From Auanema rhodensis (lineage: Eukaryota; Animalia; Nematoda), in the NCBI GenBank assembly GCA_964057225.1, contig OZ059895.1, positions 14,632,001 through 14,696,000 on the forward strand: a stretch of 64,000 bases of DNA, given 5' to 3'. The position numbers were made by a program, and so were the translations under genes. Of the stretch, positions 7,194 to 14,156 are shown piece after piece; within the stretch, counting starts at the first letter, position 1; the number at the start of each line of letters is the position of its first letter. The notes under the pieces were generated by a model, which saw only the letters and a program-made list of their open reading frames with translations, was not told where the DNA came from and made no database searches.

Positions 7194-9199
7194 ATGGCCG
7201 AGGTCGGTGGCTCATTCAAGGACTCTCTTACTCAGGTAACTTGATGTTTTTCTTTTAAACATTTTTACTTATCCTATCTATGTTAGCTGTATGTTATAAT
7301 AGAAAAGATAGAAAGTAAGTAAGGTTTACTCAAAACGTGGAAGTTTACTCGGCAAAACAATGGATTTCAATCCAAAGTTTTTCTTTCGTTAGATCGAGCA
7401 AACAAAGCTGTGAACGACGGTACACGCATGTGTGTGTGTGTGTAGATGATACTTCTTTTCTATAATTAATTTCTTTATGCTATATCTTCTTCTATGGAAT
7501 AGTAATACCGTTGTTTTCAGGCTCAAAAGGACGAACTTCGTTCTATTGCCCAGAAGATCGTCGCTGACGGAAAGGGTATTCTTGCTGCTGATGAATCAAC
7601 TGGTAAGATTTTCACAATGATAGAGAATATAATAGTTGAAATATTGATTATTTTTTGAAATTGTTTTTGTTTTTTTTGTCTCTTGTATGTTTCACAAGAT
7701 GATGTTATCATATCATCATTGAAAGAACATTTGTGATAGTAGTATCATCATGTTATGGTGTTATATGGCGTGACCGGTGGGTTAAGAAATTAGATAAAGA
7801 AACATAAAAAAAATAATAATAATAATAGAAATTATAATAAAAATGGCCATTTTTCTATCTATTAATAATTTTATAATAATTTGTTTTTATTATTATAGTC
7901 TTGTCTTTTTATAGGAACTATTGGAAAGCGTTTATCTACCATCAATTTGGAGAACAACGAAACCAACAGACAGAAATACAGGTTTTGTTTGTCTTTGAAT
8001 TTATTTTAATCTTTTAAAAGTTAATTAGATAAGAGTAGAGACAATGTGAATGTTGATATATGTGTGTACTTAATGGGGTTACTTTTCCTCTTTTCAGACA
8101 ACTTCTCTTCACCACTCCAAACCTCAACGAGCATATCTCTGGAGTCATCCTTTACGAGGAAACCTTCAACCAGGTTTTTCTATTCTTCTTGAATTTTGAT
8201 GAGTTATGGTTCGATTTTAGAACACTGATAAGGGAGAACGTTTCGTCGACCTTCTTGTCAAGAATGGAATCGTCCCAGGAATCAAGCTTGATTTAGGAGT
8301 TGTCCCTCTTGCTGGAACTATCGGAGAAGGAACCACCCAAGGTCTTGATAACCTTGCTCAACGTGCTGCTGCCTTCAAGAAGGTAATTGCATAGGGATGC
8401 GATTTCATTGAATATTTCTGTTTTTCAGGGAGGATGTGGATTCGCCAAGTGGCGTTGTGTCTTGAACATCGGAACCCACACCCCATCCCACCTTGGAATG
8501 CTCGAGAACGCTAATGTTTTGGCCAGGTGCGAATAATAGAAGCAGAATAACGCAATCACAAACATAAATTTGCAGATACGCCACTATCTGCCAAGCTAAC
8601 GGACTCGTCCCAATCGTTGAGCCAGAGGTTCTCTGTGACGGAGAGCACGATCTTGAGCGTGCCCAAAAGGTTACCGAGCAAGTTCTTGCCTTCGTCTACA
8701 AGGCCCTCGCTGACCACCACGTCTACCTTGAGGGTACCCTCTTGAAGCCAAACATGGTCACCCCAGGACAAAGCTGTGCCACCAAGGTCCCACACGAGAA
8801 AATCGGACACGCTACCGTTGAAGCTCTCCGTCGTGGAGTCCCAGCTGCCGTTCCCGGAGTTACCTTCCTCTCTGGAGGACAATCTGAGCTCGATGCCACC
8901 GCCAACCTTAACGCTATCAACAAGGTAAACATCTGTTTCTCACTAATCTAAAGCTAATTCGAGTCATTTTGCAGTGCTCTCTTGGTAAGCCATGGAAGTT
9001 GACATTCTCATATGGACGTGCCCTCCAAGCTTCCGTCCTCAAGGCTTGGGGAGGAAAGGACGAGAACATCGTCGCCGCCCAAAAGGTCCTTTTACACCGC
9101 GCTAAGGCTAACGGTCTTGCTTCCCTCGGGCAATATGCTGGAGAAGATGCCGCTGGAGCCGCCGCTGAATCTCTCTTCATTGCCAAACACAGCTATTAA
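7194..9199 (+). CDS. aldo-2: Fructose-bisphosphate aldolase class I
   Basis: [41 protein letters not shown]...LKPNMVTPG...[16 protein letters not shown]...AKHSY, very close to C. elegans ALDO-2. Strong C-ending codon bias. Confidence 0.97.
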
Positions 9200-9534
9200 G
9201 AGATTTCATATAAACCTCAATTGATCAATGTTTTATAGATAATATTGTTTTCTCAAATAATAAATCATTTTTTCATCTAAACATGTTTGTTTATAGAAAT
9301 ATGAATAAGATATGCACTGTATTTACTGTTAACGACGCGCATTTACTTAACAGGTTATTGATTGCATATCACATACTATCGGAAATTTGATTAGAAATTC
9401 CAAATTTCGTAATTTTTGGAGCTATAAATCATTTACTACCATTCTGAGCATTTTTTATGAGCATTTTCAGTCATTGTTGGCTCTAATTAGTTTGCTTTTG
9501 AAGCTCTCATTTAGTTTTCTTTATTCTCAGTTAA

Positions 9535-12500
9535 ATGAGCAATACCACAACGACGTCGGAAGCATCAATACCTGTTAAAGATGAAGTTTCACCTAAAAGT
9601 ACTTCTAGAGTACGGACTGTTTCAAAAACCTATTGTTTGATGCTTCGTCTTCGATCATTTTTGAACATTTTGATTAAGATTGTGCCAGTGGTAGCTATCA
9701 ACAGGATGTTAGATCATTTGTAGGAGATGATATGGATAGGTAAAAAGCTTAAATTTAAAGTTTTGTATTCAAGTAGACTTCAATGTTTTTCAGATATCTG
9801 GCTGAACTGGGATTCGTGAAGCGTATTGTACCTAAAGATGGAAATTCCTTATATAGATGTATAAGTGAACTAGTAATATTTCTATGAATTCATACATAGC
9901 GATAAGCTTTTCCTATTTTTAGTTGTGTTTGAATCAGTGTAATTTTTTACCAATCAAGAATATGATAGAAGATCATGTCCAACTTCAATATAAGTTACAA
10001 CAGTTGGAACACAATGAAAATATTGTAGATAGAACAATGGATCGTTTGATAGCTGCTTCACTTATATATAGGCAAATTATGCAATATATTCTTCTGAATT
10101 TTCAACATTTTTAAAAATTTAGAATTAAAATTATCATTTATCGTGGTCGGACTGAGCCAAAGATCATCGGTGCTGATTATGATAAAGAAGTAAAAAAATG
10201 AAATTTTCTAAATATACGCTTTTATAACCTCATCTCATTCCAGTTAACTCTGTGTGAAATCTCTCCGAATTGTTATGAAAGAGTATACAAAAAAAATCTT
10301 CAAGTGCCATTGGCTATATGCCAAAGTAATTTGGAAACTTCAGTTCTCATATAAAACTTTTAATTTAAGCATTTTTATATCAATGTTTATATGAGCATGT
10401 TATAAACGTTCCCAAAACTGTTATACAAGAAGCTATTATTCAAGTGCGACTTGACATCGGTTTAGCTTGTGTAATATATTCTTCAAACTGAGAAATATTT
10501 TTAGATTCTTCGGGTAAAGATCCGTCAACAGCATCGACCCCGCTTCCAATAAAAACTTCTGTCTTCAGCTTTTGTCCCTGTAACAAGACACAACAGCCTT
10601 CTGTAAGTTTCGAAATAGAAAATGAGTATTTCGCAATTACTTGTGATTAGGGATATCGTCCACCAATTCCGTACTCTGCTGTCAAATCGTTAGATCCAGC
10701 TATTTATAGAAATATTGCTTACGATTTATATGCTAAAGATAAGCGAAGAGCTGTTTTAGATGATAAGAAAGGTTTGTATATGTCTCTTTCAAACTTTTTA
10801 AAAATCTTTGATTATGCTAATTATGCGTGAGTACACGTTTCTATTTTTTTCGGCATCGCAAACGGTTGTATCTGATCATTTTTTTAAATTTTCAATTTTG
10901 TAACTTTGATTGTTCCAGAAAAGGAAAGAAAATGCGATGATCGGTTTCCTGTTGGCAGTGTTTGTATGGCTAGAGATGGTAGAGACATCTTGAGAGCTAA
11001 AGTTATTTCAGTTCTTCCTGATAATCATAGATGTATTCGCTTTGAAAATGGCACAGAGTAAGTCTAATATCATTGTTAAGGTGGTAAATAAATAATTTTC
11101 TAGGAAGAATGTGATTGTATCCGACCTAAGATCGGTAGTATCTCAAGTAATCACTCCTTGTTCTCTTACGACTCCCGACGTATCAGGAAATACGCCCACA
11201 CAGCGAGTTTCTATTCTGGAACCTGTATCATATAGTAAGATTAGAGCCCTAAAGCTTAAGCGTCAGTCTACTTAAAAATTAAAGATGTGTCTTCTACGGT
11301 TCCCGTTAGTTTCACGAGTGTACCGACAGCAATGTACCAACAGCCCACGACATACTACATTAATCAGCCTTTTCCGGCTTTTCAGCCAATAATGTAAATT
11401 GATATTTCATTAACCATGCTATCTCAACTTAATTTGCAGGGAAAAGCACGTTGAACATTTATCAACTAATAATTCTCACCAAACTAAGAAAGAAGGTTTG
11501 TTTATAATTTTTTTTATTGGTTCGCATCTCGCGCACCTATTTGTAGTTTGTACTTTGCCAAATAATGTGATAGATGTGACAATAAGTAGAATTTTTTTGT
11601 TATCAACCTCTTGTTTTCGAAACCAATATTTTAAATCTTAGAAATGGATCGTGATGCTTTTGCTGTTGGCAAAACTTGCCTTGTTCGTGATGGAAAGGAT
11701 TTTGTGAAAGCCAAGATTATTTCAAATTTCCCTGATAATAGCAAGTGTGTTCGATTTGAAAATGGCTCAGAGTATTATTTGTTTTTCGTTATTACGTAAA
11801 ATGTTTTCTGTATTAAGACGTAAAGTGTTGTTCGGCGAACTTCGACCTCTGTTGAGCACATCAGGTAATAGAGATTTAATGGTTGATCCAATCAACATCA
11901 ATTCTAGCACCCGTGAGTTTTCTTTTCAATGTTTGATTTTTTGGTTTTTAACAAAGTCTTGTGTAGATTCCCTTGTTCCTGCTATGGCATCTTTCCCTAT
12001 CCAACATACTCCACCTTTTCCTCCCGGATTTCATCTTCCTCCTTTGAACATTCCTCCACTGAATATGCCTCCTCCAAACATGTATGTTTACAAGATTCTG
12101 TGTACCTCTCCACCTCTGCTTGATATATTCTTTTTAGGGTGAAGGGTGTTCCTGCTGCTCGTCTTATGTCTTCTCCAAAACAATCATCTTCCTATTATGT
12201 GCCTCCGTTTGATCCAAATGTAGAGAAGACAACATGGTGGCAGCCTCCTGCGAATATGCAGTGTAGTCCTAGAGTAGTTTCGAAAGTTGTTAAGTATGAC
12301 GCATATCTTTGATTTAGCTTAGCGTTGGTCATCGCCCAATGTATGGCACTTCAGTATCTGCTCCTCTTGTGGTTAGAAAGCTAGAAGCCTGCTCCATGCC
12401 AGTAACTCCAATTTATCCAACCCCTCCTCCTTGCTCGGATAGGGATTTGGTGCAAATGTTTTACGTCATCATCTTGTTAACTTGTTCTTTTTTCAGTCTT

Positions 12501-13187
12501 CTGTCTTTGTTAGCCCAGTTAGGTCTCAAGGCTTTCCAAAGAAGAATGTACCTTACATCGATTATGAAAATGTCAATAGAGTTATTCAAACAGTAGACTT
12601 TTCCAAGAAAGAGGATGGGTCCGATTTACCCGATGGTTCATAAAGCTCTTTCTGGTGTAGCATTCGATTAAAATTGATTTTTTCCAGATATCTTGACCCT
12701 GCGTTATTTCTTTAACATGGGGGTCATGACTTTCCGAAATGGATATGAATTCATGAATTCTTCCCTGGACAGAGGTTTTAACAATTTCAGCGCAAATTAC
12801 CAACATCAAGTGCCTTTAGAATCTATGTCATCGGCTATATCGAATGTATCCGTCCCCCCTCCGTCCGCCATTCCATTGCCAGTTTTTCCTGAGCATGTGC
12901 CCATCCCCGTAGATGCTTCTGCCGTTCAGATGTCTTTTGACTGCTCTATGCCACCACCATATCCTCAATCTGCTCCACCTCAGCCAAACATGCAGCATCA
13001 GCAGTCCGTTGGAGGTGGTGGTAATGCTTCTGCTCCAGCCGTGCCGCCTACCAATTATACCCGTGAGTTTTTCTTGGAAGCAACCCGCTTAACGATCTGT
13101 TTTCCAGGTTATATCCCCATGAACGCTCCGATGCCCGTTTGTGTAAACGGTACCTTTTATTATAATTCGCCACTTGTTAGCTCCTAA
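9535..13187 (+). CDS. OTUD4/ALG13/Drosophila Otu family protein: degenerate OTU domain, two Tudor-like domains, Pro-rich tail
   Basis: Spliced motifs IVPKDGNSLYRCISE, RLIAASLIYRIKIIIYR, LCEISPNCYERVY, AICQTFLYQCLYEHV, PIPYSAVKSLDPAIYRNIAYD, DGSDLPD..LTLRYFFNMGV. These correspond in order to family signatures (DGxCLFR, NHYD, KALDPEIYRNVEFD, DLP..LRFFFNLG). Confidence 0.85.
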
Positions 13188-14156
13188 AAACATTTGTCGT
13201 TTCCGTTCCTGCTCTTCCCAATGTTTCTCGTTTTCAAAGGTCTCACTGTTTTACGTGGATATCAGTCCAGTTTTACTGTCACGTTATACCAATTTTTTAC
13301 CTTTGTTGTTATCGCTAAAGTTTAGATTTATATATATTCTGGAATGTTTTAATATTTTGTTGTTTGATTACTGTGCTTTTTTTGTTTTCCTGTTCAATAT
13401 TCATGTAGAGAAGTTATTTGTTAATGTGTTTTGTTTGAGTAAAATTAGTTTTCATACATACTTGCCTCTTCTCAATTCATTTTGCTCTAGCGTGTAAGCA
13501 AGTACATATTCGATGCTGATGAAGGATTTCGAATCGGCTTGTGTGCGTGTGTCGATGTGTCATCATCACCTCGCTTAATTATCATTTAGGCCATGCGTAA
13601 AACCTGTTTTGTCATAATATTATTAGATGGGTCATTCCCAATGAGATACGCATGTCGTAAACTAACCACAGCATCTGAGAATCTATTTATAGATTCTTAT
13701 GATGTCGGCAAGTTCTTCAATATATATTTACTTCTAGACGTCGCGAGCGTTATCGTCTGTCAAAAGACAACGATTTATGTTTTTTGCCTTTCTCTGATTA
13801 CTTCTCGTTTTCCTTTTATTTCTCTTCAACTTTTTCAAGCTGTCTCTCTTACTCTCCTCCACATTCTGTACTGGTGACGTCGTCTTCAGAAGCACATTAC
13901 ATCCCAATACTTTGTATCTTCATGTTTTATCTTTCATGTATCACCAACCAATTCCATTTTGTCAAAGTTCCGGTCGTGTTGTAAAGATAATTTTGACATT
14001 ATCATCTTCTTACCAGATTCCTGGGTGAATTGTCTTTGAACTCTCCTTCTATGACCAAAGGCGGGACTTCCGCCCGCTGTTTCCGTAGCGGTATTGTCGC
14101 TTCATTTTTTCGCTAATTTTAGTTTTGATCAGCCCAAGTTGGTTATACTGATCAGC

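Follow-up and report, generated by a model that had tools for sequence, protein, structure and literature searches.

A nematode protein of the OTUD4/ALG13/Otu type in which the catalytic residues of the OTU-like domain are probably lost

The gene described here lies at 9535..13187 on the forward strand of a 64,000-nucleotide stretch of Auanema rhodensis contig OZ059895.1 (positions 14,632,001 to 14,696,000; hereafter the window, in whose numbering coordinates are given unless otherwise stated) and encodes a protein of 827 residues, in which an OTU-like domain is followed by a conserved linker motif and two Tudor-like barrels. The protein is probably a nematode representative of the OTUD4/ALG13/Otu branch whose protease chemistry has been lost, and which would serve as a catalytically dead scaffold or adaptor, as judged from sequence motifs together with predicted folds. 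The frame of the gene is unbroken, its transcripts are spliced, and the replacements found in both former catalytic loops are shared by the syntenic orthologue of a second, distant Auanema species.

Probable replacement of the catalytic residues in both loops

The first of the two family signatures is encoded by exon 3 (9794..9872, + strand; ...VPKDGNSLYRCISEL), in which the codons at 9837-9860, GAT GGA AAT TCC TTA TAT AGA TGT, read D-G-N-S-L-Y-R-C. The catalytic Cys of the OTU Cys-loop (D-G-x-C-[LF]-[FY]-R) is absent, and DGNSLYR carries Ser72 (TCC, 9846-9848) in its place, as does DSNSLYR of the orthologue. The second signature, LTLCEISPNCYERVY, is encoded by exon 6 (10244..10325, +; listed joints 10189>10244 and 10325>10370), where Cys162 (TGT, 10271-10273) in NCYERVY is equivalent, by motif alignment, to the catalytic His of the OTU His-loop (…N-H-Y-[DN]…), which is absent here and in the orthologue alike. 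An earlier note on this DNA, made by a model from the letters alone, had reported the Ser codon in DGNSLYRC and the Cys codon in SPNCYERVY, and both are found on direct reading exactly where it had placed them. In the orthologue the two loops read DSNSLYRC and TPNCYERVY; the Ser codon is TCT as against TCC here, a synonymous difference, and the Cys codon is TGT in both species.

One motif of the DGNSLYR type and one NCYERVY are present in each species, in the order found in OTU proteins and 90 residues apart. The number expected by chance in a protein of such composition is 6e-4 for the Cys-loop-like and 7e-5 for the His-loop-like pattern, both patterns having been chosen after the fact. From the motif alignment, and from the predicted fold match of the orthologue described below, Ser72 and Cys162 most likely occupy the positions of the catalytic Cys and His.

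Of the remaining candidate residues, Asp69 (9837-9839), three positions before Ser72, is kept in both species and has the same spacing as D37 of CG3251 (PMC4654579), although it has no catalytic significance in the absence of the Cys and the His. The cysteines conserved between the species are 76, 82, 156, 162 and 185, and His98 is the only His within the domain that both species share. An alternative dyad of Cys76 with a His appears unlikely from the sequence, as this sole conserved His sits in the helical part of the domain, encoded by exon 4 (9923..10071, +). Over windows of ten residues, the orthologue matches at 10/10 and 9/10 positions near the Cys-loop and at 9/10 near the His-loop.

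Evidence for an OTU fold and for the OTUD4 branch

The domain very probably has the OTU fold and an affinity to OTUD4, ALG13 and Otu, a view based on structural look-alikes in the ESM Atlas, on the presence of the two motifs in order and on the succession of an OTU part and a Tudor part. In the Atlas, residues 58-230 of the orthologue (database protein P0001), a stretch that includes the helix after the OTU core encoded by exon 7 (10370..10458, +; …FLYQCLYEHV…), match an arthropod OTU-protein cluster with a template modelling (TM) score of 0.81 over 172 residues, so that 172 of the 173 residues are covered, and match further OTU clusters at 0.76 (an ALG13 cluster) and 0.65. OTU or Peptidase_C65 accounts for all nine family sets listed among the 60 nearest models. 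By language-model features, the three leading clusters are likewise OTU (0.88-0.89), the best of them sharing 176 features with the query; the structure and feature searches within each Atlas query count as one source. When the query is extended to residues 58-352, ALG13 clusters come first.

The probable subfamily grouping comes from these Atlas neighbours, the best of which are the arthropod OTU-protein cluster and the ALG13 clusters, and the predicted order of an OTU-like domain followed by a Tudor-type barrel is that of the OTUD4/ALG13/Otu subfamily. The assignment to an OTUD4/Otu family made in the earlier note is supported by the Atlas neighbours, by the OTU-then-Tudor order and by synteny-confirmed orthology, and is not upheld by any Pfam or PDB sequence match. 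A further lead is the sequence of human OTUD4, in which the flanks of the Cys-loop, the S-L-x-Y-R...I-I-Y-R strand and N-H-Y-D-I-V-Y (against N-C-Y-E-R-V-Y here) presumably line up, and the linker ...KSL.P.[IV]YRN... and C-terminal FFN.GV motifs presumably resemble those of the present protein, as may short motifs of ALG13.

Orthologue and selective constraint

The orthologue is a 794-residue unnamed protein from Auanema sp. JU1783 (Rhabditidae), encoded at L001 10001-13611 and sharing 65% identity with the model across 768 aligned positions. The exons of the domain have equal sizes in both species (61/79/149/67/82 nucleotides, nt), and six genes are collinear between window positions 2700-23400 and the JU1783 locus, namely a tryptophan dioxygenase, an aldolase, the OTU-like gene, an MFS transporter, a ShK gene and a DCX kinase, with the ShK-domain gene and the DCX-domain kinase on the minus strand.

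Constraint between the two species follows the parts of the protein. It is strongest in the block that separates the OTU domain from the Tudor-like barrels and holds the linker motif of exon 9 (10651..10769, +; GYRPPIPYSAVKSLDPAIYRNIAYDLY…), with a nonsynonymous divergence (dN) of 0.03 and 95% identity, followed by Tudor-like barrel 1 (dN 0.07, 87.5% identity), the OTU part (dN 0.17, 75%) and Tudor-like barrel 2 (dN 0.30, 60%), while the disordered linkers reach a dN of 0.55-0.60 at 37-41% identity. Synonymous divergence (dS) is saturated and hence undefined in most regions, and lies at 1.3-2.3 in the four regions for which it could be computed. With a dN of 0.17 as against 0.55-0.60 in the linkers and with saturated dS, the OTU-like domain is under purifying selection. 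The low dN of the domain, together with the nine or ten identical residues out of ten in the loop windows, therefore indicates that the gene is not decaying and that the former active-site region is still constrained. The pattern fits that of a pseudo-deubiquitinase: Ser72 and Cys162 are conserved, and the domain that holds them has been kept under selection.

The comparison among orthologues that the earlier note had proposed could be carried as far as this one species, in which the Ser and the Cys are both kept; no further relative was found in the databases searched. An exhaustive search of 1.84 billion representatives gave P0001 as its single match, its query being 12690-13061 of the C-terminal exon 20, the longest stop-free stretch, which is unable to reach distant OTU relatives. 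Word-index protein searches with the whole of P0001, with its region 60-345 or with the domain alignment returned only P0001 or nothing, a metagenome scan for relatives gave 297 pattern matches of which none was confirmed, and a full-text literature search for the motif strings yielded nothing relevant. The database entry of P0001 lists no Pfam domain and gives it no name beyond 'unnamed protein product'. The OTUD4-type family in nematodes is missed by automatic annotation.

Per exon, the genes on either side mostly reach 75-95% identity between the two species, as against 65% for the OTU-like gene, which therefore evolves faster than its neighbours.

Gene structure and transcription

The coding region comprises 21 exons, with the ATG at 9535, the stop codon at 13185-13187 and no frame breaks. 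The model was built from 15 listed joints, contig coordinates and depth bins, and the joints beyond those 15 are consistent with contig arithmetic and with the depth bins. Contigs from four public runs (X1-X4, belonging to one study and one organism and recorded as 'RNA?'), when placed on 9300-13400, align at 100% identity and skip stretches of 44-147 nt at GT..AG boundaries, and they therefore originate from spliced mRNA. The open frame that the earlier note had described for the exons it traced extends over the whole 827-codon gene, and its proposed check of the splicing against transcripts, made here with the contigs of these runs, supports the model.

The first intron (9635-9678) was placed by means of the 44 skipped bases in the depth table and is the sole in-frame GT..AG interval of exactly 44 nt; a 47-nt GC..AG interval at 9642-9688 is likewise in frame. 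Exon 4 is represented by contig pieces covering 9923-10068 in all four runs and is followed by an intron of 51 nt with a GC donor (10072..10122, +). No GT is present in this interval, and the contig arithmetic (340 nt, record positions 392 to 733) fits it exactly. In Auanema sp. JU1783 the corresponding intron begins with a GT donor (gtaagg), after an exon of equal size, 149 nt. Apart from this GC..AG intron, the remaining 19 introns of the gene are GT..AG. Exon 5 (10123..10189, +), which like its orthologous exon measures 67 nt, encodes the central strand region of the domain (…IKIIIYRGRTEPK…). At the other end of the gene, exon 20 (12687..13062, +) encodes a conserved C-terminal block (…LTLRYFFNMGVMTFRNGYEF…) and then a Pro-rich low-complexity stretch, and it is connected by the listed joint 13062>13108 to the last exon, which ends with the stop codon (13108..13187, +).

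Assembled transcripts begin at about 9529, beside an acceptor-like TTCTCAG|TTAA 4 nt upstream of the ATG, which is consistent with trans-splicing of the 5' end; the loose ends reported for the aligned contigs include no spliced-leader letters. The annotated orthologue protein has 19 additional N-terminal residues, from an upstream exon that is not part of this model. Upstream of the gene lies that of the fructose-bisphosphate aldolase, which ends at 9199, and the window as a whole is intron-rich and of nematode type.

The duplicated Tudor-like barrel

The two Tudor-like barrels are encoded by exon 10 (10917..11057, +) and exon 14 (11640..11771, +), the second being an internal duplicate of the first, with about 50% identity between them in self-alignment. 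For the first, the Atlas structural neighbours of orthologue residues 290-352 are the Tudor regions of 53BP1, SMN, PHF20L1 and ALG13; Pfam gave no Tudor match, either for single exons or for the orthologue. The introns directly before each Tudor-like exon, at 10770-10916 and 11494-11639, are about 147 nt long, whereas all others measure 44-56 nt, and the same pattern is seen in the orthologue, with introns of 144 and 167 nt. The two long introns show no clear likeness to each other (68 of 170 columns identical), and the duplication is therefore visible only in the exons and in their position.

Alternative explanations

A number of results weigh against the reading of the protein as a pseudo-deubiquitinase of OTU fold. 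All domain searches were made with single exons and with the orthologue. Pfam hmmscan detects no family at E<=10 in P0001, taken whole or as residues 55-235, and none in the single window exons. The earlier note had named the lack of an OTU profile match as evidence against its own proposal, and PF02338 indeed does not match the orthologue at this threshold, so that OTU membership rests on weaker evidence than a hidden Markov model (HMM) hit. Searches of PDB sequences, by the orthologue domain as well as by the exon of the Cys-loop, found no OTU chain. AlphaFold2 models from a four-row alignment of the two species and from the single sequence were unusable, with predicted local distance difference test (pLDDT) values of 35 and 42, the better model gave noise only in Foldseek, and no residue-level superposition for the Cys and His equivalences was obtained from either. 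The Atlas evidence is moreover a language-model fold of the orthologue rather than of the window protein. On a rival reading the domain is not OTU but a lineage-specific one that resembles the OTU motifs, its language-model fold having been hallucinated toward a common family. The word searches, like Pfam and PDB, give no relatives beyond one orthologue, and in the Atlas a third of shuffled proteins also obtain ten of ten best matches in one family, scores below 0.9 being leads only. Such an origin is nevertheless distinctly unlikely, given that the TM score of 0.81 extends over all but one residue of the query, that the best neighbours belong to a subfamily which also carries a downstream Tudor domain, that the 176 features shared with the best match exceed the 170 typical of true family members, and that the joint chance expectation of two family motifs in the right order is far below 1e-6.

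If the fold is accepted, the domain might still be a hydrolase with a non-canonical site, in which Ser72 is the nucleophile, or Cys162 or Cys76 a relocated one, or which acts as a Cys-independent ubiquitin esterase. The two loops that once formed the active site rank with the best conserved stretches of the domain (Cys-loop 10/10 and 9/10, His-loop 9/10), and five cysteines are conserved; other groups have reported a Ser40-dependent deubiquitinase activity of Otu, as cited in PMC12012553, and weak esterase activity on Ub-Ser has been found in OTULINL, which is without a catalytic Cys (bioRxiv 10.64898/2026.10.20.760496). No His, however, lies in or near the His-loop, the only conserved one being in the helical part, and the Ser-type proteins CG3251 and Otu are inactive on all eight di-ubiquitin linkages, Nedd8, SUMO and generic protease substrates (PMC4654579), which makes a hydrolase improbable. 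A related thought, also quite improbable, is that the cleft has been rebuilt as a new site, with Ser72, Cys162 and, close to them in the sequence, the conserved Cys76 and Cys156 forming a Cys-independent esterase for ubiquitin or ubiquitin-like proteins, a redox switch or a metal site; this would explain why the loops are near-invariant despite the saturated silent sites. It might finally be argued that the catalytic residues drifted in a gene no longer needed, as its identity of 65% is below the roughly 75-95% of the flanking genes and no relatives are detectable in other nematodes in the databases searched. A decaying gene is hardly credible, however, in view of the frame of 827 codons that is intact over 21 exons, the full-length spliced transcripts, a dN far below the saturated dS, and a conservation that follows the domains and includes the exon structure; the pseudogene reading was rejected on the intact frame, the spliced transcripts and the constraint.

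Proposed function

As a catalytically dead scaffold or adaptor, the protein would have Ser72 in place of the nucleophilic Cys and Cys162 in place of the general-base His, with only the upstream Asp kept, and its OTU-like domain would no longer cleave ubiquitin isopeptide bonds but may have been retained as a binding surface. The parts of such an adaptor would be the dead OTU domain, the nearly invariant linker motif, the two Tudor-like barrels, which are degenerate, and a long disordered tail in which short motifs are conserved. Since conservation peaks in the stretch that joins the OTU to the Tudor-like part, we infer that this stretch is a partner-binding site. Its location would correspond to that at which fly Otu, between its OTU and Tudor domains, binds Bourbon and Mycbp (PMC12012553). 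If OTUD4 and Otu, in their roles that need no catalysis, are a guide, the partners brought together may be other deubiquitinases, MYCBP-type proteins or RNA-protein complexes. The germ-granule role, with binding of ubiquitin and RNA, that the earlier note had suggested is a putative one. The nearly invariant motif is a concrete candidate for a conserved partner-binding site. For annotation, the present gene illustrates that an OTUD4-type gene can escape every profile-based method, which may explain the apparent absence of the family in nematodes.

Comparison with known systems

The closest published parallels are Otu and CG3251 of Drosophila, in which an OTU domain at the N-terminus likewise precedes a Tudor domain, the position of the nucleophile is taken by Ser and the Asp three residues before it is retained. 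Louis, Hofmann and Broemer (2015) found that both fly proteins have Ser at the Cys position and keep the Asp and the His, that they are inactive on all ubiquitin linkages, and that putting the Cys back does not restore activity (PMC4654579); the Ser at the catalytic position of Otu, which the earlier note had cited, is therefore correct. The same work reports that CG3251 does not bind ubiquitin chains and concludes that the function of these proteins is independent of deubiquitinase activity (PMC4654579), and in published work Otu S40A rescues germline function; Otu acts by way of a complex that it binds between its OTU and Tudor domains (PMC12012553). The fly proteins differ from the present one in that they keep the His (H143) and match the Pfam OTU profile, whereas here a Cys is found at the His position and there is no HMM match; the Tudor-like barrel is duplicated here, and the lineage is Nematoda.

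Human OTUD4 has the same order of parts, and for it, too, roles that do not depend on catalysis are documented: it serves as a scaffold for USP7 and USP9X and has a part in RNA granules, with catalysis dispensable (PMC10919355), and it binds MYCBP in human cells through a site on OTUD4 that has not been mapped (PMC12012553). OTUD4 differs from the Auanema protein in having an intact triad, with which it cleaves Lys48 di-ubiquitin (PMC3705208), and a single Tudor domain. The OTU-Tudor isoform of vertebrate ALG13 is the nearest or second-nearest named structural neighbour of the OTU part of the orthologue and is a neighbour of its Tudor part as well. Although its triad is intact, it shows no activity on any of the ubiquitin substrates tested (PMC3705208; bioRxiv 10.64898/2026.10.20.760496), and it differs in keeping the Cys and the His and in having a glycosyltransferase domain, which the present protein lacks. 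FAM105A/OTULINL is a pseudo-deubiquitinase of OTU fold that, like the present protein, is without the catalytic triad residues (PMC3705208), but it belongs to the OTULIN-like subfamily, with a larger fold and no Tudor domain. Among nematodes, AgR002_g271 of Ascaris suum, the one published nematode 'otud4', has been annotated as an OTUD4 orthologue; according to PMC10996262 it had not been described before in the nematode literature and marks a cluster of intestinal cells, and a germline-only role is therefore not favored.

The recurrent loss of the catalytic Cys to Ser in the OTUD4 family is already known, such changes having arisen repeatedly in insects and in Fugu, and nematodes go unmentioned in that study (Louis et al., 2015; PMC4654579). 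New here are the nematode lineage, the added change of His to Cys, a sequence too diverged for HMMs to detect and the doubling of the Tudor-like barrel. Nematodes, and a more complete loss that takes in both Cys and His, are thereby added to the repeated catalytic losses already published for the family, which strengthens the view that the core job of the family needs no protease activity.

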